This document shows positions 2,782 through 46,609 of a stretch of DNA of 64,000 nucleotides, in pieces. A program made the position numbers and the translations under genes. Each line of letters opens with the position of its first letter. Within the stretch, counting starts at the first letter, position 1. Where the stretch lies: the IMG/VR virus record IMGVR_UViG_3300032236_001850, positions 124,001 to 188,000 of that record; one strand, written 5' to 3'. Under the pieces are notes generated by a model. It had not been told where the DNA came from. It saw only the letters and a list, made by a program, of their open reading frames with translations, and did no database searches.

Positions 2782-3342
2782 TTATGTAAATTTTGTTGCT
2801 CTTTTAGCTTTTATTAATTTTGTATACAAATCCCTGTTTGGAAGTTTATTTAGAATTTCTTGTAAATCCTCCGAATCCACAAATCTCATTATTCTGGGTG
2901 GGTTTTTTATTAGAGAATCAATAACACATTGATCAAAATCATCAGTTCCGTTATTTTTAAATATCTCATCAACATTACTAAAAACTTTTTTAAATTCCTC
3001 AATTATTTTGTACGGATTTCTTTCAATACACCAGAATGAGTACTTCTCATTATTTCTTGGTTTAAGTCCACTCCAGGCTTCATAGTCCATATTGTCGGCA
3101 TCTTGACTATTCATTAATTCACCAACCTCACTCATAAGCATATAAAGATCAGTCACTGTTGAAGCATCAGCTTCCTCAGCAAACTCTGAAATAACAACCG
3201 CAGCTGCATCAAAGAAATCCTTAGCAACCACGATCAAGTAACCAATCGTTGATACCTCCCTGCCAGTTATTTCCATATAGAAAACAAATCCCATCATATC
3301 AGATTTGTCATTTAGTTCCTCGTATAGTTTAATGTTTCTCAT
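2782..3342 (-). CDS. Hypothetical protein with CTS-like leader
   Basis: Starts MRNIKLYEELND; ATGA overlap with upstream gene. Confidence 0.8.
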   Translation of the reverse strand: MRNIKLYEELNDKSDMMGFVFYMEITGREVSTIGYLIVVAKDFFDAAAVVISEFAEEADASTVTDLYMLMSEVGELMNSQDADNMDYEAWSGLKPRNNEKYSFWCIERNPYKIIEEFKKVFSNVDEIFKNNGTDDFDQCVIDSLIKNPPRIMRFVDSEDLQEILNKLPNRDLYTKLIKAKRATKFT

Positions 3343-3965
3343 AAAAATCCTCTTTTTAATGCCCTTCCTATATGGGAAAAATCCTTTATTCCCGCTTTAT
3401 CCATGATTTTTTTCTTTAAATCCGGACACGGATTCAGAATATAAGTTGATGTTGGTTTGTCCTTAAAGAATTTAATAACCTTCGATTCTGGGATTCTTGT
3501 TATTAAAGATTTTATAAGATCTGGATTTCCACAGTCTATTAGCGGCTCCAAATTTTCGGGATCATCCAGGTATTTTCTATTTGACATATCATAGTCATAA
3601 AGTTCCTTAACTGCAAATTTTTCTATCCCTCTAAATATTGACTCGTAATCGGAAACACTAGACACACTAAATCCCATAATGTATTCCCAATCAAAATCTT
3701 TAAATTCGTAAATACCAATTCTTATCTTATCGTTGGATGTTGGTGTCATCTCTCTCAATTCATACTTCAACACAGTTTCATCCTCACCATGTGGATAAAT
3801 GGTTATCTTAGTTACCTTGCCGTCCTGTTTTTGTTCTGTGTTAATATCCGCCCATTCGGAAATTTTCTTATATGCATCAAGATTTCCCAATGAACCAACA
3901 TAAGGTCTATAAACATTCTCGTTGATTTTTCTTCCGAAAAGATTGAAAGATTTAATTATTCTCAT
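3339..3965 (-). CDS. Hypothetical protein, CTS-like leader plus TGIKD C-terminal module
   Basis: MRIIKSFNLF...; ends KAGIKDFSHIGRALKRGFL; GATATATA at 3970-3977 on minus strand. Confidence 0.85.
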   Translation of the reverse strand: MRIIKSFNLFGRKINENVYRPYVGSLGNLDAYKKISEWADINTEQKQDGKVTKITIYPHGEDETVLKYELREMTPTSNDKIRIGIYEFKDFDWEYIMGFSVSSVSDYESIFRGIEKFAVKELYDYDMSNRKYLDDPENLEPLIDCGNPDLIKSLITRIPESKVIKFFKDKPTSTYILNPCPDLKKKIMDKAGIKDFSHIGRALKRGFL

Positions 3966-3983
3966 CCCTTATATATCCCAAAT

Positions 3984-4069
3984 AAAAAAGGTTGGAGTAG
4001 CGAATTCCAACCTTTACATAGCCGTAACTATTCCGGTCCTAAAATCTGACTTCAGAGAGTCAGCCGGAT
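3984..4069 (-). ncRNA. Candidate structured small RNA (unidentified)
   Basis: AATATATA promoter variant at 4074-4081 (minus); stems UCCGG/CCGGA and CUGACU/AGUCAG, a UACG-loop hairpin, then terminator GGUUGGA/UCCAACC-U6; no ORF. Confidence 0.45.
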
Positions 4070-4137
4070 GTTCTATATATTCTTTGCATCCCAATTTTTA
4101 GGTCGAAATTTGATATATAAACCAAAAACATAATAAA

Positions 4138-4773
4138 ATGAGAAAAGCATGCATCGTGTTATTTCTTTTGGTTTTTGGAGTGATTAATGCTCAAGACACC
4201 ATAAGACTTAAACACACAAACTACACTGCTGTCTACAGCAAGACTTTAAATTACCCAGTACTTGTTGAATGGTGGGAAACCAAAGCAAAGGACGGATGTC
4301 CAAGCCCATTAAAAAGAAAAGATGAATTCAAACCAGATCCGCTTCTACTTAAGGAGACAGATATAGCGAAGGATTATGTTGGATCAGGGTATGACAGGGG
4401 ACATATGTGCCCAGCAGCTTCCAATCTATGTAGTGGTGATAAAGTTCAATCTGAATGCTTCTATTTCAGCAATATGGCACCGCAGCTTCACAGATTAAAT
4501 GCTGGAGATTGGAAAGTATTAGAGATGAAAACAAGAGAGATAGCGATTGCTAATGACAGTGTACATGTTTGGTGTGGTAGCTTGGGAGAGATTAAAAAAG
4601 TTGGTAAGATATCAATACCTAAAACCTGTTGGAAAGTGGTTTACATCAAGAAAACAAAAATCTTTACAGCATACATTTTCAATAATGATGATTCAAAACC
4701 AGACGGAATAGAAAACAATATAGTTCCTCTGGAAGCAGTAGAAAAATTAACAGGATATAAATTTAAAAGGTAA
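4138..4773 (+). CDS. DNA/RNA non-specific endonuclease (NucA/EndA type) with signal peptide
   Basis: YDRGHMCPA motif, FYFSNMAPQ, LNAGDWKVLE; hydrophobic N-terminus ending VINA-QD. Confidence 0.92.
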   Translation: MRKACIVLFLLVFGVINAQDTIRLKHTNYTAVYSKTLNYPVLVEWWETKAKDGCPSPLKRKDEFKPDPLLLKETDIAKDYVGSGYDRGHMCPAASNLCSGDKVQSECFYFSNMAPQLHRLNAGDWKVLEMKTREIAIANDSVHVWCGSLGEIKKVGKISIPKTCWKVVYIKKTKIFTAYIFNNDDSKPDGIENNIVPLEAVEKLTGYKFKR

Positions 4774-4806
4774 AAAAAAGGCTGATATCAATATCAGCCT
4801 TTTTTT
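4773..4806. terminator. Bidirectional intrinsic terminator
   Basis: A7-GGCTGATAT-caa-TATCAGCC-T run between convergent genes. Confidence 0.85.
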
Positions 4807-5569
4807 ATATCATTCCAGATTTTAGTTTTCTACCTATTTTTCCGTAATCTTTTAACCCTGTCCTTTCCAATACTCCAGCCTTAAATTTCTCAAGATTGTC
4901 GATCTTATAGAGTTCCAATGGATTTTTCTTGAAAAAATTATCAATATCCTCAAGAACATCATAATTTATAGGATCGCCGATTTTTAATTTAAGTATGTAC
5001 TCTAGATATTTTCTAATGAAATTGGAATATTCCGGAAGATGTAATTTTTTACTCTCCAAACCAGCATAAGTCATATAAAATCTACCCCCATATTCTCTAA
5101 AAGCTAATAAAATTTGGGATATAATAAGATGAAAAATATAGTTATTATCTCCGCTAACCTCTATTTGTCTCTCCCCAGCTTCATCAGTTCCTATATAATC
5201 AAATTTATTCTCGTCAGATTCGCCAATTACAAATCTTATTTTATAAACATTTGAACCTGATCCAAGACCAGGAGAGCAACTCATTATTTTTTCATTGGGT
5301 TCTGGGTTTAGAGCCTGGGTAAAAGCATAACTTATTGTTCCCCAAAGGAAATATGTATTTAATATAACATCAAGTGTCTTGAGCCCATTTGATTTATAAT
5401 CATAGATATCACCAGCATCATAATTAGGAAAAACATGTAGACCAACAGCTTGAGAGTGATTATTTTTATCCACTCTAAAAGTTATACATTTTTCCAAATA
5501 ATGGTATATTGGAATACGATCAATTGATTCTGATTCAAAAAGTTGATCAAAGGATTTTATTATTTTCAT
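4805..5569 (-). CDS. Hypothetical protein, CTS-like leader plus TGIKD module
   Basis: MKIIKSFDQLFES; ends RTGLKDYGKIGRKLKSGMI. Confidence 0.85.
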   Translation of the reverse strand: MKIIKSFDQLFESESIDRIPIYHYLEKCITFRVDKNNHSQAVGLHVFPNYDAGDIYDYKSNGLKTLDVILNTYFLWGTISYAFTQALNPEPNEKIMSCSPGLGSGSNVYKIRFVIGESDENKFDYIGTDEAGERQIEVSGDNNYIFHLIISQILLAFREYGGRFYMTYAGLESKKLHLPEYSNFIRKYLEYILKLKIGDPINYDVLEDIDNFFKKNPLELYKIDNLEKFKAGVLERTGLKDYGKIGRKLKSGMI

Positions 5570-6684
5570 TATATGAGCCCTCCTCTTAATTTTCTACCGA
5601 TAGCACTAAAATCTTTAATCCCAGTTCTTCTTAAAACACCAGCTTTATATTCTGGATAATCATCAAGTAAATAAAGATCCGTTGGATTTTTTTTCATATG
5701 GTCATCTAGGATTTTTTCAACTTCGGAACTCAAAGATGAACCAAGAAGATAACTTCTAGCAAAATCGGTGAGCAAATTGGATTTTTCATTCATATCTATA
5801 TAGTTTTCACCTATATAAATATTCAAATGTTCGATTTCCGTAGTGATTATCTTCTCTATTTCTTTAACCACCTCATCAATAGTTTTATAACCAAGATAAA
5901 TTTTAATATCTCTCATCTTTTTACTACGACCATGAAGATCAAGGTTTCGATCGACATTTTTGCTTGTTACCTTTTTACCTTCCCCTTTCGGTATAATTCG
6001 GATTTCATTTGCATTGGTACCAATCATGTATTGATTATTGTTTCTTTTTACAGCACCGCTTATTTCCAATATAAAATCAGGGAAAATACGTATGCCAGCT
6101 AAGGCCAAATAACGAAAATTTATCACAATCCCAGCATTTTTACCTTGCATATAAATACCACTAATCGAATTAATATGATCTATCAATTTGGATTTACCCT
6201 TGATTAAAGAGAAATCTGTTATGATGTCGCTTCTTCTTTCTTTTCTGTATACAACATATAAATCGATTGGGAGTTCCCATATCTTGGAAAAGATGAAAGC
6301 ATCATCGTCAACAAGCTCTTTTGCTTCCTTCCTATTGAAATCATTAGGTGCAAACTTATAAACAATATCTCTGATGAAAGTTTGAAGCAGATCCACAAGA
6401 TTCGAAGAGTATTTCATACCGTAATGGCTCCCACTTGAAACAAAGGTAAAGTGCCAATCGCTTCCAGATTTATAAAAGTATGGGCTGCCCGGATTGTTAA
6501 CATAGTCACTGGTGTTTTTGTTTATCAACACATTTATTCTACCGGTTCTTGTTGGGTAAAGTCTATACCATTTTTGAATTTGCTCGAGTTCTCTAGTTCC
6601 TTCGGCTAGTCTGAAGAACTCCTCACAGTCCTCATTCATTTTGGCTGCTTCAAAAAGTTCATTAAAAGTTTTAATTATTCTCAT
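5569..6684 (-). CDS. Hypothetical protein, CTS-like leader plus TGIKD module
   Basis: MRIIKTFNELFEA; ends RTGIKDFSAIGRKLRGGLI; GATATATA at 6689-6696 (minus). Confidence 0.85.
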   Translation of the reverse strand: MRIIKTFNELFEAAKMNEDCEEFFRLAEGTRELEQIQKWYRLYPTRTGRINVLINKNTSDYVNNPGSPYFYKSGSDWHFTFVSSGSHYGMKYSSNLVDLLQTFIRDIVYKFAPNDFNRKEAKELVDDDAFIFSKIWELPIDLYVVYRKERRSDIITDFSLIKGKSKLIDHINSISGIYMQGKNAGIVINFRYLALAGIRIFPDFILEISGAVKRNNNQYMIGTNANEIRIIPKGEGKKVTSKNVDRNLDLHGRSKKMRDIKIYLGYKTIDEVVKEIEKIITTEIEHLNIYIGENYIDMNEKSNLLTDFARSYLLGSSLSSEVEKILDDHMKKNPTDLYLLDDYPEYKAGVLRRTGIKDFSAIGRKLRGGLI

Positions 6685-6694
6685 GAAGTATATA

Positions 6695-6985
6695 TCACTT
6701 CACAGAAATCCAACCCTTACCCAGACAAACCAGATTTATAATGTCACAGTGTTCATCTGGAATATTAACCATTGTGAAGTATGAATGATCATAATCCTTA
6801 TTTGATTCAGCAAAGACACCATATAGATTTCTTCCACTGTAATATCCTGCAAGTTTTCTTCTAATATCCATATCCTCGGAGTTGCCAAAGGAGTATTTCT
6901 GACCACCAATAAATTTGAAGGAGCCCATTATGGAATCATTTAGACAATATTCTTCTCTGTAGATAAAGGATTCACCGGAGCACAT
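6695..6985 (-). CDS. Hypothetical protein, C-terminal WxxVK
   Basis: TAATG coupling to upstream gene; ends GWISVK. Confidence 0.7.
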   Translation of the reverse strand: MCSGESFIYREEYCLNDSIMGSFKFIGGQKYSFGNSEDMDIRRKLAGYYSGRNLYGVFAESNKDYDHSYFTMVNIPDEHCDIINLVCLGKGWISVK

Positions 6986-7245
6986 TATCTGATCTTTATA
7001 AATTCAGGTGCGTTAGCATAAGCCTCCAGAAGTTCATAGATTCTTTGTGACACAATAAGCGAACTCGTTCTCCAAGCATCATCACCGTTGAATCCACCTC
7101 TTATTTTATAAACATGATCCCGACCGTTGCGAACGCGCAACTTCTCAATCTCATAAGTCTCACCATGTTTCATTTCAATTTCACCATCACTGGTTCTGAT
7201 TGGCTTTATATCAAACCAACTCTTATATACAAAACTTTCCATCAT
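6985..7245 (-). CDS. Hypothetical protein, C-terminal FIKIR
   Basis: TAATTTTG promoter at 7250-7257 (minus); ends PEFIKIR. Confidence 0.75.
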   Translation of the reverse strand: MMESFVYKSWFDIKPIRTSDGEIEMKHGETYEIEKLRVRNGRDHVYKIRGGFNGDDAWRTSSLIVSQRIYELLEAYANAPEFIKIR

Positions 7246-7298
7246 GCGACAAAATTAAAAAATGTTTGCGGATAAAAAAAATAATGCACAATAAAAAA

Positions 7299-7322
7299 CA
7301 TACTATGTTACTAACATACTAT
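7299..7322. repeat. Nested palindrome element (CATASTATG-TTASTAA-CATASTAT), copy 1
   Basis: catactatgttactaacatactat in a divergent intergenic region. Confidence 0.9.
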
Positions 7323-7497
7323 CTACGCAGATCCCACCCAGGGCGCATATACGTTCGCGTATATGAACGCGCTATTAAAAACATATGTAGATCCGGTAAA
7401 ATGGTTTTACTTCAGCAGCAAACAAATAAACAAGCAAAAAACAAACTATCGGAACATTTCATAAAAAAATCGATAGAATCTTTGAAAATCCCGCAAA

Positions 7498-7680
7498 ATG
7501 GCAAAATTTATATCTCCTCAGAAAAAGTTGGAGAATGATGAATCACTAAGAAGAATCAAGATTCGTCTGGATATTAGATTTGGTAGATATAGAGATGAAA
7601 TGAAGAACGAGATACCAATCGGGATTAACGGTTCCAAGTACTACAGGGTTAAAAAACTAGAAAACAAAACGGATGAGTAG
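7498..7680 (+). CDS. Small basic hypothetical protein
   Basis: 60-aa ORF overlapping the next start. Confidence 0.6.
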   Translation: MAKFISPQKKLENDESLRRIKIRLDIRFGRYRDEMKNEIPIGINGSKYYRVKKLENKTDE

Positions 7681-7876
7681 AAAAGTTACATTAGCGGAGG
7701 GATTACGAGAAGCTGCAGGAAATCTCACAATAGTTTATATCTGTTACGCATTAATACAGTGGGAACCAAATCCACTGAAATGGAATCCAATAGTACAGTA
7801 CTTTGCCATTTTTATGTCGTGTATTTATTTTCCATATAGGGACAATCAAAGATGGGAGAGGGATAAGGACAAATAA
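7673..7876 (+). CDS. Small two-TM membrane protein
   Basis: Two hydrophobic segments flanking WEPNPLKW. Confidence 0.75.
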   Translation: MSRKVTLAEGLREAAGNLTIVYICYALIQWEPNPLKWNPIVQYFAIFMSCIYFPYRDNQRWERDKDK

Positions 7877-7921
7877 TCCCACGGTGTCCGCACATACACG
7901 ACCGCATTCGATATATAATGT

Positions 7922-8554
7922 ATGAAAATAATAAAGACATTCGAGAGTTTCGAGGAGAAGGAATACACCTTTGATGAACTATCACAAGATGCAAAGAATC
8001 ATGCAATAGAGAACGAGAGAGGTTCATTGTATGACAGTATGGGTGATTGGTGGTACGAAGGAACAATAGAGGATGAAGCACAAAAACTAAGGGATGAGGG
8101 ATTTGAAGATGTTGATATACAATTTTCAGGATTCCACAGTCAAGGTGATGGAGCTTCATTTACTGGCAGAGTATCAGACATTAAACTTTTTGTTAAAGGC
8201 ACTCTCGATATGAAAACCATGAGCGACCAGGTTTTAGATAACATTTACATCTCAGTGGTTAGAACAGACACCAGACACGTTCATGAAAACTCGGTTAGGT
8301 TTGATTGTGAAGTTGACGGTGAGGAAGAAATAGTTTTATTCAGAGCACCAGGTTCAAATCTAGATATAAAAATATCAATTCAGTCTCAGTGTGATAAAAT
8401 AGAAGAAGTCGGAGCACCTTGGGTCAAGAGTAGATGTAAGGAGATATATGAAAAACTCGGTAAGGAGTACGACAGCTACTTTGAAGAGGAACACATAATA
8501 GCAGACATTAAAGCAAACGACTGTAAGTTTGACGAAGACGGAGATTTAATTTAA
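7922..8554 (+). CDS. YTFxELS-family phage protein with CTS-like leader
   Basis: YTFDELSQDAK..., FSGFHSQGDGASF; GATATATA 4 nt upstream; paralogous to 9805..10410. Confidence 0.85.
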   Translation: MKIIKTFESFEEKEYTFDELSQDAKNHAIENERGSLYDSMGDWWYEGTIEDEAQKLRDEGFEDVDIQFSGFHSQGDGASFTGRVSDIKLFVKGTLDMKTMSDQVLDNIYISVVRTDTRHVHENSVRFDCEVDGEEEIVLFRAPGSNLDIKISIQSQCDKIEEVGAPWVKSRCKEIYEKLGKEYDSYFEEEHIIADIKANDCKFDEDGDLI

Positions 8555-8586
8555 AGCACATCAAAAAGATGTGCTTTTATTTTTTT
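8554..8586 (+). terminator. Intrinsic terminator
   Basis: AAGCACATC-aaaaa-GATGTGCTT then T run. Confidence 0.75.
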
Positions 8587-8634
8587 ATTCCGAAATGATT
8601 TCATATATTTGCAATGATAATTATAATTGTAACT

Positions 8635-9159
8635 ATGAAACACTTTCTGGATAACCTAAACATCTTCCAAGATAGAAACGACGGAAAATTAAAATTGCTA
8701 CCAAAATTAGACGGACTATCTGCTTCTTACACACCATATTCTGAATCATATAAAAGCAGATTACCAGAAATGCTTGCTTCAAGAACGGACAGTCAAATTA
8801 AAAGATTCGAAACGGAAGCAAGAGGTAACCTCGGCAAGGGTCTAAGACCGTACACTCTAGGAAAATACGATGAATTAAACGAGATCGCGGAACCAGATGC
8901 GGAAAAACTAATTGCAAAATATGTTGCTTTAAAACTTAGAAACCCAACTCCGGTTATACTTTGGCATTATCCAAGTATGGTTAAATTAGCTACACCACAT
9001 ATGATTTCAAGGATTGAGAAAATTCTTGAGTATGAAAAAACTAAAGCAGATTTATACCAAGCTATAGAGGATCTTGAGCATAGTCACAAAAGATACCTAG
9101 AAGGAAACGAAAAAACTATAGAATCAGTTCTTAAAAAAGGACACAATCTCATGATATAA
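8635..9159 (+). CDS. Hypothetical protein ending KGHNLMI
   Basis: ATG 8635 after promoter 8604; tail shared with next gene. Confidence 0.8.
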   Translation: MKHFLDNLNIFQDRNDGKLKLLPKLDGLSASYTPYSESYKSRLPEMLASRTDSQIKRFETEARGNLGKGLRPYTLGKYDELNEIAEPDAEKLIAKYVALKLRNPTPVILWHYPSMVKLATPHMISRIEKILEYEKTKADLYQAIEDLEHSHKRYLEGNEKTIESVLKKGHNLMI

Positions 9160-9734
9160 TGGAAAACGAAAACGATTACTATTCCTTTGCAGACCAATAT
9201 GGTAGTGTTAGAAATGACGGAATAAGAAGATATGTTACTTATGACGGCGAAACATCAAATGTGATTAGGGATAGAGGAATAGATGCTCTGCAAGCTATGC
9301 GAGAGGAAATTGAAAGATCATCAAGAATAAGTTTAGTCGATGCAGCTGCTTTAGCACAAATACAGGCATATGGAAACGAGCACAGAATGAGGATGGAAGC
9401 GAAAAAACCGGACTGTGTTCTTGACGATGTTTTGATGAATCTAAAAAGAGGACTAAAACCTTATTATCAAGAAAGACTCGATTACTACATAGGTGAAGTT
9501 GATTCCAATAAAGGGTGCTATATAGAATATGAACCAGGAATGGAATTGTTACCGTCACAAAAGGTGGAATGGTTACTGACAAAAACTGTTGAAAAGATAA
9601 ATGCTCTATACGAATCTAAGAAAAAAGCATATCACGATAAAATAAATGCTGAAAAGATATACAAGGATAAAATAGAAAGTTTAGAAAAATCGATAAAAAA
9701 TTATAAAACGAAGGGACACGACCTTATGATATAA
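9159..9734 (+). CDS. Hypothetical protein ending KGHDLMI
   Basis: TAATG coupling; tail shared with previous gene. Confidence 0.8.
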   Translation: MENENDYYSFADQYGSVRNDGIRRYVTYDGETSNVIRDRGIDALQAMREEIERSSRISLVDAAALAQIQAYGNEHRMRMEAKKPDCVLDDVLMNLKRGLKPYYQERLDYYIGEVDSNKGCYIEYEPGMELLPSQKVEWLLTKTVEKINALYESKKKAYHDKINAEKIYKDKIESLEKSIKNYKTKGHDLMI

Positions 9735-16517: not shown

Positions 16518-18221
16518 ATGGAATCAGGTACACTACAATTTTGGACAACTGGCGAGGCCTATATGGGCTTAATGAACGACTTTTTTAGATCTGGAGAATT
16601 TGAAAAATATCATCAGCTGCTTGGGGATGGCAACTTAGACAGAGCACAAAAGATGATGGCATTCAGATATAGAATGGTCCTAAGTGGGGACACTAGAACG
16701 GAGGAGGGTTTAAGCTGTTCTTTTCTACCAGAAGAGCCAAAAGACTTCAATAAAACACTATATTATGCTATTAGAACAGCTATCGTTGCAGCTAATAGAA
16801 AACATGATAGATGGAACGATAAAACTCTGGAAATAAGAGAGATTGCTAAATCCGGCTACCGAGATATTGTTACTCTACTAGAATATTTTCCAGTTGAGGA
16901 AATCTATAAGAGATGCTACAAATACATCATAGAGGAGGAAGGTTATACGTTAACCACTCTCTACGATGCAATAACTAAAAATGACCATACAATCTCGGGT
17001 CTTCTAATGAGAAACGGTGAGTTTGCTCAATGTGGTTACCAGGATCACATCTCACTGTATCCATTTCTTGTTCAACTTGGACTTGTAGAGGGTGAGGACA
17101 GATTGGATTGCGATGCAGTATCAATATCATCTAATATGTTATGTGGTGCTGCTGCTTTTGGGTTGGAATCTCTACATTTTGACCTTAATAAAAGGTATCA
17201 TCTCAGTGATGAGCAGATGACAGAGTTATGGCGACTTAGAGAATATCATCTACAGCACTACACTAGCAATGAGAAAAGATCAGTATCGGAAGGAATTCGT
17301 GAATTTTTCTGCTACAAAGAAGCAATGGGTGCTAAGTATGGCAACATTATGTTTCTAAAAAGATTTTTTCCACATATCAAAACATGCGAGGTTTCCAAAG
17401 ATTTCAGACCAGATTGGAAAGCCAACTTTGTTAGAACCTCACCAAAATATTCAATTCCTGGTCTTCTACATAGTATTAAAGCTAACGACGAGCAAGAAGC
17501 ACATAATGCTGTGCTACAAATCCAGAAAGACTTCGAAAAACATAAGGAAGTTCGGGGAAGAAACAATATACATTGGTTCTATCAGGAGTACTTGGAAGGG
17601 GAGAACGGTGTACTCAATTGCATAAAAACAACGGAGGTTAGCCGTGGATATGCAAGAGAATATGCTAATCTGATGGAATATGACATAAAGATAGCATGTA
17701 GCTCGGTTCAAGGTGACATTGTGGGTGGTAAGAAATCAAGCTTTGAAATAAGTTTAGACGATCAATCAGCACTAAGAAAGATTGCTAGAGAACTTGCAAC
17801 CACTTTCGAGGAAGACATCCAGCTAGAATTTGTAAGAGTTGCTGAGGGTGACATCAGAATAGTTCAATTCAGAACCCTGAAGGGAAGTCCACAGGTAAAC
17901 TTCGAACCACAGAAGGAAGAGTTGGAAAAAGCTATAGTGATTGGTAAAACTTTCTGCAAACCGTACTACACAAATAATGGCGACGAAATAAACACCAACG
18001 ATATTCTGGTTGTTGAAGAGGATTGCGAATCAGAAGCTCTATTGGGTAAGAAAGCACTTATAGTTGAGAATGACACAAACTTCTCGCACATTCTCGCACT
18101 ATCCAAAGCCCTAAATATTCCATCTATATACGGCACAGGTAAGGTTGATCTACCTAAGGACAAACAGGTTTGGTTTAATACAGGATATGGTACGGGGTAT
18201 GTAAAAATAATCACCAAATAA
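16518..18221 (+). CDS. PEP-synthase/PPDK-like ATP-grasp plus phospho-His swivel-domain protein
   Basis: VRTS, QEYLEGENGV, IQLEF...IVQFRTL (ATP-grasp-like) and DILVV...FSHILALSKALNIPSIYG (mobile His domain); no TIM-barrel part. Confidence 0.7.
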   Translation: MESGTLQFWTTGEAYMGLMNDFFRSGEFEKYHQLLGDGNLDRAQKMMAFRYRMVLSGDTRTEEGLSCSFLPEEPKDFNKTLYYAIRTAIVAANRKHDRWNDKTLEIREIAKSGYRDIVTLLEYFPVEEIYKRCYKYIIEEEGYTLTTLYDAITKNDHTISGLLMRNGEFAQCGYQDHISLYPFLVQLGLVEGEDRLDCDAVSISSNMLCGAAAFGLESLHFDLNKRYHLSDEQMTELWRLREYHLQHYTSNEKRSVSEGIREFFCYKEAMGAKYGNIMFLKRFFPHIKTCEVSKDFRPDWKANFVRTSPKYSIPGLLHSIKANDEQEAHNAVLQIQKDFEKHKEVRGRNNIHWFYQEYLEGENGVLNCIKTTEVSRGYAREYANLMEYDIKIACSSVQGDIVGGKKSSFEISLDDQSALRKIARELATTFEEDIQLEFVRVAEGDIRIVQFRTLKGSPQVNFEPQKEELEKAIVIGKTFCKPYYTNNGDEINTNDILVVEEDCESEALLGKKALIVENDTNFSHILALSKALNIPSIYGTGKVDLPKDKQVWFNTGYGTGYVKIITK

Positions 18222-18271
18222 TTTTTTTATTCGAAAAGGATTTCTTATATTTGCATATCGATTTAAAACAA

Positions 18272-18478
18272 ATGGACATGAAAAATTTTGTATATCTAGT
18301 AAAGAGTAAAAACAAGTTAATAGTAACTTCCATGGCTGTTAACAATCCGGACTATATCGTTTTACTCGCATCGGAAGGACCACAATCATTTGAATACTGT
18401 AAAATGTATTGCTTAGGTTCCATGACTGGGAATCAAGTTGGAACTAAATTCAATAATTCAATCTCTGATTTTCAATAG
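18272..18478 (+). CDS. Hypothetical protein
   Basis: ATG 18272 after early promoter. Confidence 0.65.
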   Translation: MDMKNFVYLVKSKNKLIVTSMAVNNPDYIVLLASEGPQSFEYCKMYCLGSMTGNQVGTKFNNSISDFQ

Positions 18479-39892: not shown

Positions 39893-40039
39893 TTATTTTT
39901 TCTTTCTTTTTTTCTTACGTTTAATTCTAACACAATTAGGAACTATCCTACCATCCAGTTCTTTAGTGCCTATCTGCTTAAATCCTACCCAGCATGGATC
40001 ATTCTTTTCGGCTAAAAATTCATCAAATTTTAGTATCAT
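39893..40039 (-). CDS. 48-aa CTS-leader peptide with CW...NCV motif and basic tail (not in ORF track)
   Basis: MILKFDEFLAEKNDPCWVGFKQIGTKELDGRIVPNCVRIKRKKKRKKK; TAATG coupling to 40039..40620. Confidence 0.8.
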   Translation of the reverse strand: MILKFDEFLAEKNDPCWVGFKQIGTKELDGRIVPNCVRIKRKKKRKKK

Positions 40040-40620
40040 TAGTCTTCTATTTTTTTAAATTCTCTAATCGAATTTTCATCAAAAATTGCAACATTCTTGC
40101 TTCCTCTTTCAACCAAACAGAATCCATCATAGCCCGATTTTTTAATTGCTTCTAATATAGGAGCACATTCTATGATTCTCCATGCTCCGTGTTTGATTCT
40201 CCAAAGGTAGTGATAAACACTATCACCTGGGTCATCAACATCAAATTCTCTGTCAGTGTCGTAATCATATCCCTTCATACCAGAAGCACTAACAGGTTTA
40301 AATTTGGTACCGTTAGTTTCATCCTCATATCCGCTAACAATCATCTTCTCTATCACACCCTTCAGGTCAAGCTTCTTGGCAATCTTAGGGTCCATAGGGT
40401 CACAAAGGTTAACTCCAGGTTTTAGCCACACTTCCCAAACTGCTCCATCCGGAAATTTTGATCTCTCATCAGCACCAGAAAAATCCTTAGCAAATGCAAG
40501 ATTACTAGTCAGAAATATACAACCACCAAATCTTTTCATTTTAGGTGGGAAATCTCCTTTTCTATTTCCGTGGTACAATCTCTCACCAACGAAAGATTCA
40601 AATAAAGCTATGTGTCTCAT
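40039..40620 (-). CDS. ADP-ribosyltransferase-fold protein with CTS-like leader
   Basis: RLYHG, IFLTSNLAFAKDF, GYDGF...VAIFDENSI. Confidence 0.7.
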   Translation of the reverse strand: MRHIALFESFVGERLYHGNRKGDFPPKMKRFGGCIFLTSNLAFAKDFSGADERSKFPDGAVWEVWLKPGVNLCDPMDPKIAKKLDLKGVIEKMIVSGYEDETNGTKFKPVSASGMKGYDYDTDREFDVDDPGDSVYHYLWRIKHGAWRIIECAPILEAIKKSGYDGFCLVERGSKNVAIFDENSIREFKKIED

Positions 40621-40635
40621 TAATGTATGTTAAGA

Positions 40636-41208
40636 TTAGTATCTATCATCATCATATTTTTCCTCAATCATGAAATCAAAAATATCTTCGTATCCTGAGG
40701 TGTAATCAAGTTTTTTGGCTATATCCTTAATCTCACTATCAGTTTTTCGGTGATTATCGAAAGCTTCAGCAAATTCTTCATTAAATTCTAATTTTGGCTT
40801 CCAATCCATTTTTCTTGCTAAATTGATTGCCTCTATCTCTTTTTGATTAACCGGAGGTGCATCAAAAATTCCAACCTCAACATCCACCGTATCTCTATCG
40901 TAAAGGTACCATCCACACGAATCCAGCCAATCATGTAGTAATTCTTCAAGTTTTTCAGATGTTGCATTTTCTGGAACCTGAAAGTTCCATGGTTCTAAAG
41001 GATTTTCGTCATCAACACCAATCCAATTCGAAAGAACAACAAGAAGCTCGTTGAAATCCTTTTGTAGATTCATACCCTTAGAAACCCCAATTGTTGTAGT
41101 TTCTTCCTCCTCCGGACAATAAAAAAATATTTTTGCCACTATAATTTTACCTCCACCTGAACCCGAGGATTCAGATTCGAATAGTTCATATTTTCTAATG
41201 TGTTTCAT
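40636..41208 (-). CDS. Acidic hypothetical protein with CTS-like leader
   Basis: MKHIRKYELFES; GATATATA at 41226 (minus). Confidence 0.82.
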   Translation of the reverse strand: MKHIRKYELFESESSGSGGGKIIVAKIFFYCPEEEETTTIGVSKGMNLQKDFNELLVVLSNWIGVDDENPLEPWNFQVPENATSEKLEELLHDWLDSCGWYLYDRDTVDVEVGIFDAPPVNQKEIEAINLARKMDWKPKLEFNEEFAEAFDNHRKTDSEIKDIAKKLDYTSGYEDIFDFMIEEKYDDDRY

Positions 41209-41300
41209 CGATTAACTTTTTTGTATATATATCGGTTAAACAAATCCTCATTTTTATTTTTTTATTTGGAAAGGATTTCTTATATTTGCATATCAAATCA

Positions 41301-41516
41301 ATGGAAATGGACAGATACCCAAAGGACGAGCAACTAACAGGAATTTACGTTAAGAGATGTAAGTGTGGTGCCAGACCTTATATGGACAGAGTTATGTCAG
41401 GTGGCACACCCAAGTGGATCAAGTGCGACAACTGTGGGAGAACTGGTGAGAGTGATCGAGATAAGCAGACAGCAATAGATAATTGGAATCAAAATAAAAT
41501 AGTTTACGAATCATGA
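41301..41516 (+). CDS. Lar-like (restriction alleviation) zinc-ribbon protein
   Basis: KRCKCG...IKCDNCG...AIDNWN pattern. Confidence 0.6.
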   Translation: MEMDRYPKDEQLTGIYVKRCKCGARPYMDRVMSGGTPKWIKCDNCGRTGESDRDKQTAIDNWNQNKIVYES

Positions 41517-41749
41517 GCGACACTAAAACAAAATCGGAACAAATAGTAGAAATAGAGGAAAGAATTAAGCACTTATTTGCAGAAAGTTCATTAACTAAGG
41601 AACAGTTAAAGACGTCCAATTCCCTGATAGAGGAATGGAAAGTATTAACAGGATGGAAAACTGATGAGACGCCATTCCTGAAAGGATCTCACGACCGGAT
41701 TCTTGATGACAAGCCTGTGTGGTACTATAAATTAAGTCAAAAATACTAA
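41513..41749 (+). CDS. Hypothetical protein
   Basis: ATGA coupling. Confidence 0.75.
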   Translation: MSDTKTKSEQIVEIEERIKHLFAESSLTKEQLKTSNSLIEEWKVLTGWKTDETPFLKGSHDRILDDKPVWYYKLSQKY

Positions 41750-41774
41750 GATGATAAATTTAAAATAAACCACG

Positions 41775-42125
41775 ATGAAAACAATTAAATTTACATTTAT
41801 TCTTTTAATAACAGCATTTGTTGCAGTATCTTGTGAGAAGCAAAGCAAACCAGTGCAGGAAATATTAAAAACTGACGATCGTAGCGATCTCATTGTTTAT
41901 GGAGATTATGATGACTACGGAGTACATCATGACGACGGTACTGCATTCTATATGCTAAGAACGTGTTATAGAGATTGCAGAATCACTGACTGTGGCACAT
42001 CAGAGTATATTGATAAACTAATCAAGCAAAGAAGAAATGATGTGGTTGCTCTCCAAAAAGAGTATGACTCGCTGGTTCATAAAACTGAAACAGATTACGA
42101 TAAACTAAAAGAAAAAACCGAATAA
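41775..42125 (+). CDS. Lipoprotein
   Basis: Lipobox AVS-C. Confidence 0.82.
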   Translation: MKTIKFTFILLITAFVAVSCEKQSKPVQEILKTDDRSDLIVYGDYDDYGVHHDDGTAFYMLRTCYRDCRITDCGTSEYIDKLIKQRRNDVVALQKEYDSLVHKTETDYDKLKEKTE

Positions 42126-42134
42126 AAATATAAT

Positions 42135-42224
42135 ATGGGATATTATCACGCTTTTATGATGCTCTGCGCATTTGTTATCATCATAATACTAGGTGGAATC
42201 TACGAGAACACAAAAAGAAAGTAA
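42135..42224 (+). CDS. 29-aa TM peptide (not in ORF track)
   Basis: MGYYHAFMMLCAFVIIIILGGIYENTKRK; TAATG coupling. Confidence 0.5.
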   Translation: MGYYHAFMMLCAFVIIIILGGIYENTKRK

Positions 42225-42298
42225 TGAAACAACGGATCATCACCTGGATATTAACACGAACCACGTGTATCTGGCTTAGATGGATAAAAAGAAAATAG
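42224..42298 (+). CDS. 24-aa peptide ending RWIKRK (not in ORF track)
   Basis: MKQRIITWILTRTTCIWLRWIKRK. Confidence 0.45.
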   Translation: MKQRIITWILTRTTCIWLRWIKRK

Positions 42299-42299
42299 C

Positions 42300-42494
42300 A
42301 TGGCAACAACCTGGAAATCAGAAAAACAGTCACTGGCAGAGTTAAATGACAAGGTGAAAGAACAAGCTAAGCTAATCAAAACCCTTAAGAGCGAGGAGGA
42401 GATTAGAAAGATGTTCGATAGGTATAATGAGTTCATAGCACACCACGACATCGAGGAGTGGCAACCGTGGATAGACAAACAATTTAAAAAATAA
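42300..42494 (+). CDS. Hypothetical protein
   Basis: 64 aa. Confidence 0.75.
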   Translation: MATTWKSEKQSLAELNDKVKEQAKLIKTLKSEEEIRKMFDRYNEFIAHHDIEEWQPWIDKQFKK

Positions 42495-42499
42495 AAATC

Positions 42500-42832
42500 A
42501 TGTCAGTAAGAGTAGAACAGTATTTAATTTATGGCTATAAGTTCGGGGAAGAATTTACAGAGGAGTATTGGGAAAAGGATTTTAGAGATGATATGGAATG
42601 GGATAAGAGAAAACCTAAGGACCAACCATTCTTTATCACTGATGGAATGAGCGGAGATTACACGTTCTTTGGTTTGATCTGTCAACTATCAAATGGCTGG
42701 GACGAAGATTACGATGCAAAGGAAATCGATTTCCCGTACAACAAAGGGATTATTATTGAAAAATTCTCGGAGTTATATCCAGATATGGAAATTCCAGGAA
42801 TTAAATTATATTATTTACCACACTATGTTTAA
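42500..42832 (+). CDS. Hypothetical protein
   Basis: 110 aa; DGMSGDYTFFG. Confidence 0.8.
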   Translation: MSVRVEQYLIYGYKFGEEFTEEYWEKDFRDDMEWDKRKPKDQPFFITDGMSGDYTFFGLICQLSNGWDEDYDAKEIDFPYNKGIIIEKFSELYPDMEIPGIKLYYLPHYV

Positions 42833-42843
42833 AAGATAAACAA

Positions 42844-43134
42844 ATGAAAAAGATAATCTTATTCTTAGCAATCATCACCCTAGTATCATGCGATGATGGT
42901 ACAAAACCAAAATTTATAGGTCAGGACATCATAGACGGTAAGGTTTCTGCAATAAAACCAGGAACAGCGGGAGGATATGGACATCCAGCGGATCTTCCAG
43001 TCATCTGGGTACAGACACCCACTGAAACAAGAAAGGTTGAAATTCCATTTGAGTATGAAGGAAAATGGAAAGTTGGCGATACCTGTTTACTAATCATAGA
43101 GAGATACGTGGAACCAACAGAGACAACCAAATAA
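42844..43134 (+). CDS. Lipoprotein
   Basis: Lipobox LVS-C. Confidence 0.82.
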   Translation: MKKIILFLAIITLVSCDDGTKPKFIGQDIIDGKVSAIKPGTAGGYGHPADLPVIWVQTPTETRKVEIPFEYEGKWKVGDTCLLIIERYVEPTETTK

Positions 43135-43586
43135 TGAACAAAGTATTCCAGCGTAACGTGAACAAAGGGAATGGTGATTGCGTCAGAGCTGCACTGTCAA
43201 CTCTATTTGGTATTCAGTACGAGGATTGTGAACCGCTTGCTCCGGATGAACACCAAGCATACAACATGCTGCTCTTCTATAGAAAAATGGGATACGATGA
43301 ATTCTCATTCTATAGAACCAATATACAGTCAGAAGAGAGAGGATTTCCATCACTTGCAGAGGTATTGGAATTCGACGGAGGAATCAATGGGCTCTTCTAT
43401 GCATCGGTTAAGTCTAGAACATTCGACGATGGTACTCATGCAGTTCTTATAGACAAGAGCGGAACTGTTGTACATGATCCGAATCCAAACCAAAAATGTT
43501 TGGGTCTAGGTATAGAAGAGGTCATAGATGTCGTGGTGACGGGGAATTGGCACATTTCAACGGAAGGTAAACTAATAAGAGAATAA
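43134..43586 (+). CDS. Papain-fold (C39-like) peptidase candidate
   Basis: GDCVRA (Cys), THAV (His), VHDP (Asp); TAATG start 43134. Confidence 0.6.
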   Translation: MNKVFQRNVNKGNGDCVRAALSTLFGIQYEDCEPLAPDEHQAYNMLLFYRKMGYDEFSFYRTNIQSEERGFPSLAEVLEFDGGINGLFYASVKSRTFDDGTHAVLIDKSGTVVHDPNPNQKCLGLGIEEVIDVVVTGNWHISTEGKLIRE

Positions 43587-43587
43587 A

Positions 43588-43803
43588 ATGAAAGTAAAAA
43601 TAGAATACATGCTCATCACTGATCTACTAGGAGATAGACCCAACGGTAGATGTCCAGAGATCTTCAAGAGCGTAGAGGAGGCAACCCAGCATTGGAGAAT
43701 CCATTATCAAAATAGAAGCAAGGGTGATGGTTACGATGAGTACTGGAGAAAAACCCCTCTAAGAATACAGCAGATCATCACAACCAATCTTTGGGAAATT
43801 TAA
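43588..43803 (+). CDS. Hypothetical protein
   Basis: 71 aa. Confidence 0.75.
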   Translation: MKVKIEYMLITDLLGDRPNGRCPEIFKSVEEATQHWRIHYQNRSKGDGYDEYWRKTPLRIQQIITTNLWEI

Positions 43804-43815
43804 AACACAAACGCC

Positions 43816-44016
43816 ATGCCTGAACAATTTAAAGACTACATCAAAGGGAAATACCCAAACCTTGACACAGATAGAATCCTGTCTCTGATAGATCAGAACG
43901 TCAAACAGATACAACCAAATCTAAACAATCCAACCAGAGGATGTGTGGTGCCAATCGGCTGTGATCTGAACAAGAACCTCATCATTAAAATCATTTCAGA
44001 GTATCTAAATCCATAA
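43816..44016 (+). CDS. Hypothetical protein
   Basis: 66 aa. Confidence 0.7.
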   Translation: MPEQFKDYIKGKYPNLDTDRILSLIDQNVKQIQPNLNNPTRGCVVPIGCDLNKNLIIKIISEYLNP

Positions 44017-44018
44017 AC

Positions 44019-44225
44019 ATGAGACTAGTTAAGTGGAAGACGTTGATCCAGAATCAGCATGCCTTCGAATACGACGAATTCACTATGAAGGGCACAGTCA
44101 TGATAGAGGATGACTCGCTGTCAGACGAAGGGATCAGTAAGAGGATAGAGGAGAGGCTGCTCACTCAAGAACAGAGAGACAACAGGGTTTCAAAAATCTC
44201 CATCACCCACATTCCCATCATCTAA
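44019..44225 (+). CDS. Hypothetical protein
   Basis: 68 aa. Confidence 0.7.
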   Translation: MRLVKWKTLIQNQHAFEYDEFTMKGTVMIEDDSLSDEGISKRIEERLLTQEQRDNRVSKISITHIPII

Positions 44226-44268
44226 GAACCCGATTTTGCTAAGATATATAGAGAAAATAAGCAACAAA

Positions 44269-44568
44269 ATGGAAAATATTAAACCTTACGAGTCATTCAA
44301 TTTGGAACCAGAAGAAGTAAACGAAAACTTCTGGACTAAAATGTTTGGCAGACCCACAGTCGATGATGCTGCACATGACTCACTAAGAGGAAAAGGCTTC
44401 AGTCACAGAGGCAAGGACAGCGAGAGATCGGAAGACAACTACATCATGTTTGATGGTAACAAATTCTATCCAGATCAGATTGAGTATGATGATTATCATT
44501 CAACCAAGGAACTTCCAAGAGTAGAGAATGGCAAACTCATCATAGCCAACCCAGCCTGGAGTATGTAA
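44269..44568 (+). CDS. Hypothetical protein with CTS-like leader
   Basis: MENIKPYESFNLE; GATATATA at 44243. Confidence 0.8.
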   Translation: MENIKPYESFNLEPEEVNENFWTKMFGRPTVDDAAHDSLRGKGFSHRGKDSERSEDNYIMFDGNKFYPDQIEYDDYHSTKELPRVENGKLIIANPAWSM

Positions 44569-44581
44569 TCATATCACACAT

Positions 44582-44610
44582 AAAAAATCCACCTTCACGG
44601 TGGATTTTTT
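44582..44610. terminator. Bidirectional intrinsic terminator
   Basis: AAAAATCCACC-ttcac-GGTGGATTTTT. Confidence 0.88.
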
Positions 44611-44677
44611 ATGACATTATCTCTAGGAACTCGGCCAATCCGAGCATATTACTAGGTGATATACGGATGGATTAAAA

Positions 44678-46609
44678 TTAGATAAATCCTCTTTTTAATA
44701 ATTTACCAATCTTTCCGGCGTCCGTTATTCCAGTTCTTTTTATAACACCAGCTTTTACATCAGGATGCGAGTCTAGCATATAAATATCCAATGGCATCTT
44801 TTTAAAATAATCATCCAAAGCAGAGTCACCTATAATCGAATCAAGAAGCGTAAATGTTTCCGGATGTTCCTTAAAAAACTCTATAAATCTACCCACATCC
44901 CATCGACCCTCATTCTGCATAATATATTTTTTACCATTTATATCAAATGAAAAATACTCACCAATCTCATCAGGTAACCCCTTAAGTGATTTCAAATTGT
45001 TACCTGTACAAATAAAATATCCTCCGACCTCCCCCGGTGCTCCTTCTAAGGATTCAAGATTGTTATCATAACATTGGAAGCTTCTACCAACGATTTCAGG
45101 TGCTCCCTCCAGAGTCTTTAATTTGTTTTTTGCACACACAAATGAATTCTGGATTTCCCTAGGTGCTCCCTTCAATGACACAAGTTTGTTATCATTACAA
45201 AAGAAGCCAAAGGAAAATTGAGGTGCTCCCTCCAATGAGGTTAACTCGTTACTGGTACAACTGTATTCACCCTCAACTATCTCCGGACCTCCTTTTAATG
45301 ACTTCAGCTTGTTTTCTTGACACTCAAACCTACCGGCCACCGTTCTAGGTCCTCCCTCCAGTGATTCTAGTTTATTCTTATTGCAAGTGAAATTACCATT
45401 AACAATTTGAGGTGCACCTTCAAGGGTTTTCAAATTGTTGTCTGAACAATCGAAACCATCCACCGTTTGTGGTGAACCTATTAACGATTCTAGATTACTA
45501 TTATTACAAGCTAAACTTTTCACTTTCTCTGGTGCTCCCATCAGGTTTTTTAAATTGTTGTATGAACAATTGAAACCACCATCCACCGTTTGTGGTGCTC
45601 CTTTTAGTGATGTTATATTATTTCTAGAACAGTTGAAATCTCCAGTAACGTGACCAAATTCAATGCCTTGGAAATTTCTTATTCCCCAGTCATTACATCT
45701 AAAAGTTCCTTTTATGTCCACAAGTCCAGTCTCCTCATTTATTTTCCATTCCCCACTAGTGCACTCGTTCAACCATTTAACTTTATTCGATTCCCTTCCA
45801 GTTCCACTAAGATCTTTAATTCCGGTTCTTTTTAGCACACCACTCTTTAAATCGGGAAGGTCGTCTAGTAGATATAAGTCCTCAGGATTCTCAGTGAAAT
45901 GATTGTCAAGTATATTCTCAATTTTTTTACCGTTTACTATTCCAAGATCGGAAAGACATGTCATCACATCCATATCATCTAATTTAATAGCGATACGAAC
46001 AAGGTCAGCAGCAAGATCAGATTTTATCTTAGAATTAAGAACAACCCCAGCTTTAATACCAGGAATTGACAGCAGAAATTCAAGTTGTTTGAATTGTCTA
46101 TAAATTTTGTAAATACCAGAATTTCCAGTAGGAAATCCTCTACTGTCACTGTTTGATGATGTTCTTAATTCTTCCTTAGATAGCTTATCTAGGATTCTTT
46201 TGATCGAAAGATTTAGTCCATAGAATTGTCCATTAAAAACAGCTTCCTTCAATGTAGAATATGAGATCTTTGAAACATATGTCATTTGTGCAATACTATA
46301 CAATATCAACTTTGTCATTGCATCGTTCATCTCCTCTTGTGTGGAGAAAGGCATATCTTTCTCAATTGTAAAACTTCCATAAATCAGGTTGACCTTTCCA
46401 TCACCGGAAGGCTTTAATGAACATGAGTAGGAGGTTCCAAAATTATATTCTCTCACCCCCAGGGAACTACTCTTGGCACCATCTCCCAAAAATTTCCTAG
46501 CCTTCTTATAAATAGGAAGTTTACTCAATGTTTCAAAAGACGGAAACTCCTCCTTGTCCTTTTTGGTTGCGCCTTCAAACAACTCATTAAATGTTTTTAT
46601 TCTTCTCAT
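44678..46609 (-). CDS. Chimeric LRR protein: CTS leader, domain, TGIKD module, 22-aa LRRs, second TGIKD module
   Basis: About 11 repeats of CxxNxLxSLxGAPxxVxGxF; module at ILDNHF...RTGIKD and at the C-terminus. Confidence 0.88.
   Translation of the reverse strand: MRRIKTFNELFEGATKKDKEEFPSFETLSKLPIYKKARKFLGDGAKSSSLGVREYNFGTSYSCSLKPSGDGKVNLIYGSFTIEKDMPFSTQEEMNDAMTKLILYSIAQMTYVSKISYSTLKEAVFNGQFYGLNLSIKRILDKLSKEELRTSSNSDSRGFPTGNSGIYKIYRQFKQLEFLLSIPGIKAGVVLNSKIKSDLAADLVRIAIKLDDMDVMTCLSDLGIVNGKKIENILDNHFTENPEDLYLLDDLPDLKSGVLKRTGIKDLSGTGRESNKVKWLNECTSGEWKINEETGLVDIKGTFRCNDWGIRNFQGIEFGHVTGDFNCSRNNITSLKGAPQTVDGGFNCSYNNLKNLMGAPEKVKSLACNNSNLESLIGSPQTVDGFDCSDNNLKTLEGAPQIVNGNFTCNKNKLESLEGGPRTVAGRFECQENKLKSLKGGPEIVEGEYSCTSNELTSLEGAPQFSFGFFCNDNKLVSLKGAPREIQNSFVCAKNKLKTLEGAPEIVGRSFQCYDNNLESLEGAPGEVGGYFICTGNNLKSLKGLPDEIGEYFSFDINGKKYIMQNEGRWDVGRFIEFFKEHPETFTLLDSIIGDSALDDYFKKMPLDIYMLDSHPDVKAGVIKRTGITDAGKIGKLLKRGFI

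Follow-up and report, generated by a model that had tools for sequence, protein, structure and literature searches.

Within a 64,000-nucleotide stretch of viral DNA (hereafter the window), taken from IMG/VR virus record IMGVR_UViG_3300032236_001850, four genes encode proteins that end in copies of one small domain, here termed the module, and that begin with a short leader of putative capsid-targeting type. The window corresponds to bases 124001-188000 of a 434,509-bp record with 35% G+C and direct terminal repeats. Near-identical DNA was found in metagenomes (pond, lake-water, and viral) of six separate studies, and the source is thus a real, circulating freshwater T4-like jumbo phage, albeit an uncultured one. 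A search for RNA sequencing runs yielded a single run, which is probably of DNA. We refer to proteins with the module as carriers and to the part between leader and module as cargo. The carriers of the window and their parts are as follows, with lengths in amino acids (aa) and model confidence as the predicted local distance difference test (pLDDT).

5569..6684, minus strand: carrier w5569, 371 aa, with leader, putative immunity-protein-like N-domain (aa 16-117), alpha/beta middle, and C-terminal module
5572..5745, minus strand: w5569 module, 58 aa, four predicted helices; pLDDT 92.1, profile score 85.9 bits
6649..6684, minus strand: w5569 leader, MRIIKTFNELFE followed by A; leader-profile score 20.6 bits
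4805..5569, minus strand: carrier w4805, 254 aa, its start overlapping the w5569 stop; leader MKIIKSFDQLFE followed by S; module at 4808-4957
3339..3965, minus strand: carrier w3339, 208 aa; degenerate leader MRIIKSFNLFG..KINE (9.1 bits); module at 3342-3491
44678..46609, minus strand: carrier w44678, 643 aa, a two-carrier fusion by alignment; leader, domain, internal module, leucine-rich-repeat (LRR) domain, terminal module
45770..45919, minus strand: w44678 internal module, aa 231-280; last helix degenerate, followed by a 'KWLN' entry into the LRR domain
44975..45643, minus strand: w44678 LRR domain, at least 10 repeats of ~20-21 aa (..F.C..N.L.SLEGAP..V.G); PHROG 7816 (3e-15) and PHROG 21719
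44681..44830, minus strand: w44678 terminal module, aa 594-643, located by the module profile

An earlier note on this DNA, made from its letters alone, had reported a TGIKD consensus at the C-termini of the proteins encoded at 3339-3965, 4805-5569, and 5569-6684, and twice in that encoded at 44678-46609; each of these copies was recovered, the last two at aa 231-280 and 594-643, with domain E-values of 1e-26 to 1e-28 against a profile of the module copies. When the 434.5-kb genome was searched with a wider module profile (A2; the w5569 module forms the first row of alignments A2 and A3), seven carrier proteins scored 57-86 bits and the best other open reading frame (ORF) 5.1 bits, confirming the module observation far beyond chance. 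A further, weak copy suspected at 2782-3342 did not hold up; that protein scores -1.5 bits (rank 270th of 996 ORFs) and has the leader only. The three carriers outside the window lie at genome positions 197313-197876 (plus strand), 198479-199237 (plus strand), and 17177-18379 (minus strand), such that the all-minus-strand arrangement noted previously is true of the four carriers in the window but fails genome-wide, with two of three outside carriers on the plus strand; the rule is therefore local to the window.

Between leader and module, the seven proteins of this genome form seven separate BLAST groups, with profile-profile probabilities below 4% between groups, so that the description of their middles as unalignable stands. 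A profile search of 1.84 billion representative proteins retrieved 157 clusters at E <= 1e-3 (81 at E <= 1e-10), all of them unnamed and metagenomic, with database names of the type 'hypothetical protein'; two of the listed matches are repeat-protein false positives. The module ends at most 5 residues from the C-terminus in 148 of 155 proteins. Once stripped of leader and module, 140 proteins fell into 21 groups without a BLAST link between groups, the largest comprising 71 LRR proteins (repeat unit ~20-21 residues) and the second the 15 members of the w5569 family. Comparison by hhalign among the 13 groups with at least two members returned one related pair (94.7%) and values below 4% for every other pair; the carriers are therefore not ordinary paralogs. 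Full-length homology, which had been set down beforehand as the observation that would speak for such paralogs, was not found. By these sequence comparisons, the module is placed at the extreme C-terminus of at least 12 apparently unrelated protein families. The shortest carriers, of 115-120 aa (the overall range being 115-643 aa), consist of a leader, a helical linker, and the module. The contigs retrieved for proteins P0040 and P0117 were of 2-3 kb.

Terminal copies of the module are 66-94% identical to the modules of their own orthologues versus 27-56% to the others in the same genome, and module-coding DNA within the genome is 37-63% identical (~50%). Since modules track orthology and DNA identity is low, the joining to each cargo is old and has been kept by protein-level selection. 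The same DNA values led us to reject ongoing recombination driven by conserved DNA at the module and leader junctions. Of the earlier idea of module shuffling, an autonomous domain on unrelated proteins thus survives, whereas shuffling as a continuing process does not.

Elsewhere, no relative of the module was revealed when 185,579 genomes of prokaryote species were scanned by pattern. Searches of 50,697 phage records by blastn and tblastn recovered no relative of w5569 and, for w44678, matched the LRR part alone (Vibrio phages, Lak phages, and others), with the matching Vibrio phage LRR protein having neither leader nor module. Scanning the carriers, together with ten further leader genes, against Pfam and PHROGs gave no usable match. 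The module is a new domain family, absent from Pfam and PHROGs.

The two copies in w44678 have a simple explanation. Over its residues 1-280, the protein can be aligned end to end with stand-alone carriers (252-275 aa), and residues 281-643 align with stand-alone leader-LRR-module proteins from approximately their residue 25-45 onward; w44678 is therefore a fusion of two carrier genes. On these alignments, the internal module is read as the former C-terminus of the first fused carrier, i.e., a relic. Four other proteins contain an internal copy, and in three of these (P0004, P0013, and P0023) the last helix is absent from that copy.

An AlphaFold model of the 58-residue w5569 module, built from an 80-sequence alignment, reached a pLDDT of 92.1 and contains helices at residues 7-19, 21-27, 31-41, and 47-54, with near-invariant positions P21, L27, P31, K34, G42, D45, and G56. 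In the model, the module is a previously undescribed, independently folding four-helix domain of ~50-58 aa. Mean net charge over 135 modules is -3.7 in the first 25 residues and +4.5 in the last 25. Fold searches with the module model (PDB, AlphaFold DB clusters, VIA-wide, ESM Atlas, and BFVD) returned nothing significant; the weak matches (Z <= 4.1) are mostly helix-turn-helix (HTH) DNA-binding bundles (DosR/LuxR, Myb, Tc1/Tc3, and unnamed HTH proteins). The predicted basic second half of the module thus resembles an HTH. Two candidate leads were discarded: ribosomal protein eS19, the best PDB-sequence profile match (E 0.018), was judged a chance similarity, and an Atlas feature search with the module alone gave meaningless scores of ~0.5.

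At the other end of the carriers, 89 of the 121 full-length proteins start with M-K/R-x-I/L-K-x-F-x-x-L/I-x-E. Counted from a putative cleavage after the Glu, position P3 is occupied by L in 64 of these 89, by I in 18, and by some other residue in 7, and position P1' by S (37), A (22), N (8), or G (6). Carrier leaders conserve F7 and F11, and in the w5569 family F11 and E12 are invariant in 24 members that are 21-69% identical. In T4, the capsid targeting sequence (CTS) reads MKTYQEFIAE (PMC8442874), and its first ten residues suffice for targeting, with positions 4 and 7 mattering there and positions 8 and 10 for processing (PMC9026906, PMC3012670). In a few carriers the start reads MKTFYEIISE (then G) or MKTFYGVLTE (then A), both close to the T4 sequence (PMC8442874). 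On a leader profile trained on foreign proteins only, a threshold of 8 bits was reached by 45 of 847 ORFs of this genome and by just 1 internal-Met control out of 2242. Six carriers are among those above the threshold (Fisher p = 1e-7), and the seventh has a variant one residue shorter. Judged from its sequence, the leader of 10-14 residues, with the consensus M-K/R-x-I-K-x-F-x-x-L-F-E and S or A thereafter, thus resembles the T4 CTS, including the (L/I)-x-E site of a gp21-type protease, and fits a putative CTS-type propeptide. In the full-length model of w5569, the leader has a pLDDT of ~50, and no sign of its packing against the module was seen in that low-confidence segment.

The head genes suit such a leader. 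The genome encodes a gp23-type major capsid protein (genome 298781-300505; PF07068, 139 bits, above the cut-off; PHROG 138) and, directly upstream, a gp21-type S77 prohead protease (genome 296799-298763; PF03420, 36 bits, above the cut-off; PHROG 207). The protease continues into a long C-terminal part resembling a scaffold, the fusion totalling 654 aa; four relatives have the protease-scaffold fusion at 657 aa, the protease being present in genomes G001-G004. The description of the leader as being of CTS type in the earlier note is thus matched by a T4-type protease and capsid protein in the same genome. In the capsid protein itself, ..SLNE is followed by SAG.. at approximately residue 43, with the conserved part beginning at residue 49, and leader-like starts are seen in two genes located shortly downstream of the capsid gene; from their sequences, these features are consistent with a processing role. 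The head block (genome 293957-305526) also includes a 927-aa ORF upstream (293957-296740), possibly the portal gene, and ORFs of 391, 300, and 858 aa downstream. None of these four ORFs has a confident PHROG or Pfam match; the 391-aa ORF matches the tape-measure family phrog_1535 at E=4.8e-4, which is not confident.

As for the cargo, its median isoelectric point is 5.5, with 70% of cargo regions acidic. The full-length AlphaFold model of w5569 has a pLDDT of 83.6, and its N-domain (aa 16-117) has its best match in Rv3902c/IFT, an immunity factor of Mycobacterium tuberculosis, with a VIA Z of 7.1 across 90 aa and a Foldseek probability of 0.89. A match to DUF4304 has a probability of 0.99 with a template-modelling (TM) score by hit of 0.51, and Imm63 and Imm59 appear among the ESM Atlas matches; lower-scoring matches include PsiB, AcrIIA11, and T7 gp1.2. 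E-values of the immunity matches are 0.08-0.5, and these matches agree in three libraries (PDB, AlphaFold DB, and ESM Atlas). We regard an immunity-protein-like N-domain as a lead from the model, with moderate scores. A toxin partner gene was not found beside w5569, which is flanked by other leader genes and, on the opposite strand, by a nuclease of secreted type. A role for w5569 as an ADP-ribosyltransferase was rejected, the Atlas feature score being <0.9 and fold searches giving no support. Were the immunity-like fold correct, at least one cargo would be of inhibitor type, in keeping with T4 IPI*, which blocks a restriction enzyme (PMC3012670).

The other recognizable cargo is the LRR, with ten repeats of ~20-21 aa in register in w44678; no Pfam LRR model matched the LRR cargo at 44678-46609 or at 2075-2779. 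The latter gene belongs to the same class in its first two parts and has another C-terminal tail. This second tail, ..KY.P......G..DM..LGDLGF, occurs on leader proteins of the same arrays (window 2075-2779, minus strand, and genome 197876-198469, i.e., L005 5876-6469), and acidic tails ending in D-L-x-D-L-G-F are found on P0199, P0205, and P0208. Tails of the ..LGDLGF type recall acidic protein-docking tails with a terminal aromatic residue, such as the C-terminus of SSB. A third element, ..CQ.ELI.AG[YFL]...AKL, ends phage LRR proteins of other metagenomes. LRR cargo is thus combined with at least three recurrent short C-terminal elements. The genes and positions concerned, together with the remaining features of the arrays, are listed here.

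2075..2779, minus strand: gene of the same class, leader MKNIKAYEIFE followed by S, then LRR; other C-terminal tail, ..DMSTLGDLGF
2782..3342, minus strand: leader-like start without module; leader 12.6 bits, module -1.5 bits
4138-4773, plus strand: DNA/RNA non-specific endonuclease (PF01223, 2.5e-34), convergent inside the leader-gene array
4804..4805, no strand: breakpoint between strains, coinciding with the 3' end of w4805
6985-7245, 47267-47584, 47606-48046, 48051-48683, and 48696-49517 of the window, and L005 3331-4500 and 7310-8207: proteins with a W-I/V-K-I-R tail
P0212, P0221, P0222, P0225, P0229, P0232, P0235-P0238, and P0240: proteins with the third C-terminal element

Proteins with a terminal strand of W-I/V-K-I-R type (..WIKIR, ..FIKIR, ..WVKIQ) are small and form a large family, of which several members have the leader. 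A 130-aa leader protein beginning MKRIKTFEELFES.. (genome 194724-195116; L005 2724-3116) has no Pfam match; it may have a small acetyltransferase-type fold. The nuclease at 4138-4773 has a signal-peptide-like start, MRKACIVLFLLVFGVINAQ, and other ORFs nearby have lipoprotein-like starts; read from sequence, the style of these starts hints at a Bacteroidota host. In addition, 14 genes, w3339, w5569, w44678, and g17177 among them, have the sequence GATATATA 4 nt ahead of their ATG (e.g., window 3966-3980, 6685-6700, and 46610-46625); it also lies 1 nt before the ATG of one gene adjoining the capsid gene and 17-24 nt before the ATG in ~38 further genes, and its genome-wide count is 92 versus ~67 expected. 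It may be a phage promoter giving leaderless or very short-leader mRNAs.

Across related phages, the number of module copies varies widely. Capsid proteins 71-90% identical to that of the source phage occur on 237 IMG/VR contigs, and among phages in this identity range the module copy number is 0-8. In a 430-kb relative (G001), the same two arrays together contain six copies. Each of four complete genomes (343-373 kb) has a single copy, which is of the w5569 family in G003, G004, and G006 and is an LRR protein in G002; a fragment (G005) has one copy, again of the w5569 family, this family being the only carrier in G003, G004, G006, and G005. Two of 18 further related contigs have one copy, and no module was found in a 271-kb related genome that is estimated as 99% complete by CheckV and has an 85% identical capsid protein. 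Given its absence from a near-complete relative and the range of 0-8 copies, the module is not an obligatory part of the virion; it is accessory, virus-restricted, and expanded in the largest genomes.

Differences are also seen at strain level. Pond and viral-metagenome strains that are 96-97% identical have other DNA to the left of position 4805, starting with a tandem leader gene, MKNVKTFDQL.. (L011 702-2289). In this slot, the window has the convergent nuclease gene at 4138-4773, and G001 has a 263-aa leader-LRR-module gene plus a GIY-YIG-like ORF (MQGIYKITSPSGKIYIGQS..). With the strain breakpoint falling at a gene end, cassettes are thus gained and lost at gene boundaries.

We consider, at a probability of roughly 40%, that the carriers are injected cargo akin to the internal proteins of T4, with the module kept as a handle that most likely serves as a nucleic-acid tether; this reading draws on both the sequences and the models. 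The leader would bring carriers into the scaffolding core of the prohead, where the gp21-type protease would remove it, while the C-terminal module would stay attached. Through the basic half of the module, the cargo, which is mostly acidic, would then be tethered to packaged DNA or to some other shared partner, this being the weakest step of the scheme, and cargo so tethered would be kept in the head and exit with the genome. In the infected cell, the variable part (LRR binders, the immunity-protein-like domain, and others) would act in the manner of T4 IPI*. The module would thus supply the DNA affinity that T4 internal proteins obtain from bulk basic composition. An autonomous domain, a CTS-like leader, and matching protease and capsid genes together make variable effectors with a common handle a reasonable proposal, as the earlier note had it; the docking role given there to the module fares less well, in that its weak fold likenesses are to DNA-binding HTH proteins and not to a docking domain.

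Several observations weigh against this reading. The best-conserved positions of the module are mostly structural-looking (Pro/Asp helix caps and a Gly turn) and outline no obvious binding surface. All of its fold matches are below significance (Z <= 4.1; Foldseek E > 3, with a best E >= 3.6), and by the calibration of the tool scores this low may reflect a common helical arrangement alone. When 80 modules were compared with Pfam at E <= 1, no HTH, SAP, or HeH family was retrieved. Finally, ~45-59 ORFs of the genome have a leader-like start, far above the number of CTS proteins in T4, and the role of the leader may therefore be broader or different.

That the module docks instead to a virion protein (scaffold, inner capsid surface, or portal), as a second signal for capsid targeting or retention, appears to us rather unlikely. 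The module is strictly C-terminal with basic last two helices, it co-occurs with the CTS-like leader, and every near-complete carrier genome has the 654-657-aa protease-scaffold fusion, all as docking would have it. However, the relative put at 99% completeness, with 85% capsid identity, lacks the module, and an invariant partner there would be without its ligand; the copy number of 0-8 fits poorly as well. The scaffolding protein of P22, which binds coat protein through a C-terminal helix-turn-helix, offers an analogy only.

An unlikely alternative is that the module acts after entry as an adaptor, directing each cargo to a single hub of the host, for instance the nucleoid, polymerase, ribosome, or entry site. 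LRR binders and an immunity-like domain would suit host-directed action, accessory distribution and expanded copy number are expected of arms-race genes, and the 115-120-aa leader-linker-module proteins could mean that the module is itself the active part. Against such an adaptor stand the 185,579 prokaryote species genomes scanned by pattern without a module relative, as well as the lack of any likeness found to a known host-binding domain.

We also find it improbable that the carriers are cytoplasmic and never enter the virion, the leader being a common N-terminal helix of phage ORFans and the module a small DNA-binding or oligomerization domain. Leaders on ~45-59 ORFs are many for capsid cargo, and the weak HTH-bundle likeness would be accommodated. 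Nevertheless, most of the 89 leader-bearing carriers have L/I at P3 and E at P1 ahead of S/A, with constant spacing from Met1, and a matching protease is encoded; F11 and E12 are invariant at 21% overall identity, and two genes adjoining the capsid gene have a start of the same type.

Removal of the module after assembly, i.e., a C-terminal propeptide that targets or tethers and is then cut off, has a precedent in T4 Alt, from which 6 residues are cut at the N-terminus (ITE-6) and 63 at the C-terminus (LTE-619; PMC5694885), the latter piece matching the module in size and position (PMC5694885). In our set, [LI]-x-E occurs at the cargo/module boundary in 19 of 140 carriers, with other enriched positions falling within helix 1, and a conserved boundary cleavage site was found in none of the seven families of this genome. 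With no conserved site before it, the module is most likely retained by the mature protein, as judged from the alignments; Alt-type removal was accordingly rejected, and a propeptide of this kind is very unlikely. Least credible of all are diverged paralogs or chance similarity, for although the carriers sit in tandem arrays typical of paralog expansion, the seven cargo regions share no BLAST link and stay below 4% by hhalign, each carrier has its own orthologues elsewhere, and module E-values are ~1e-27.

Returning to retained cargo as the preferred reading, its wider form would be a two-signal cargo system in jumbo T4-like phages, in which a cleavable N-terminal leader loads the protein and a portable, retained C-terminal domain tethers it to the genome or the exit path. 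We hold this generalization to be doubtful. If true, any payload (LRR binders, immunity-like inhibitors, or enzymes) could be co-delivered with DNA, and the module would be the first defined ejection or tether tag for phage-delivered proteins, transferable to engineered delivery. Entry into the T4 head via the CTS is well established, while retention after loss of the scaffold and exit with DNA lack a known determinant; a portable domain shared by no fewer than 12 unrelated families of putative cargo offers a concrete candidate for this function. The finding also marks probable injected effectors (LRR binders and the immunity-like domain) in a widespread clade of freshwater jumbo phages.

Among known systems, the closest likeness is to the internal proteins of T4, which are diverse, counter host defence, and have the CTS as their sole common part (PMC8442874, PMC3012670, PMC9026906). 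Shared with the carriers are a short leader with aromatic and hydrophobic residues, an (L/I)-x-E end with a small residue after it, the presence in one genome of a gp21-type protease and a gp23-type capsid protein, and otherwise unrelated proteins that vary between related phages; the cargo here plausibly counters host defence as well, as does IPI* (PMC3012670, PMC9026906, PMC8442874). The gain and loss of cassettes is likewise reminiscent of the variable internal-protein loci of T-even phages. In contrast, T4 IPI-III are small, highly basic, and share the leader alone, whereas the cargo here is mostly acidic and is joined to a folded C-terminal domain; the leader here, known from sequence, is of 12 residues instead of 10 and stands on ~50 genes. 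T4 Alt, an ejected protein, is alike in having signals at both ends and a 63-aa C-terminal piece of about module size (PMC5694885), but that piece is cut at LTE-619, whereas the module boundary has no conserved site, and no sequence or fold likeness between Alt and the carriers was found.

Giant phages of the phiKZ/SPN3US type pack tens of proteins into the head and cut their propeptides after Glu by a T4-related protease (PMC5694885, PMC10052503); however, those propeptides are often >100 aa with the motif A/S/G-x-E, no shared C-terminal domain has been described for them (PMC5694885, PMC10052503), and our source phage has a T4-like capsid protein and protease, not phiKZ-like ones. Polymorphic toxin/immunity systems (Imm63, Imm59, DUF4304, and IFT) are similarly modular, with constant trafficking parts and variable payload, yet the likeness of w5569 to them is moderate (Z 7.1, TM ~0.3-0.5, 7-16% identity) and its context is that of a phage. 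The module itself has in common with HTH bundles (LuxR/GerE, Myb, and Tc1/Tc3) its small size, its bundled helices, a turn that contains Gly, and a last helix that is basic; it differs from these in that all matches are insignificant, Pfam gives none, and the putative recognition helix ends at the protein C-terminus. Encapsulin cargo-loading peptides are C-terminal targeting elements for capsid-like shells; together with the coat-binding HTH of the P22 scaffolding protein they provide, by analogy only, a further parallel to the carriers, i.e., a C-terminal element on cargo inside an HK97-fold shell.

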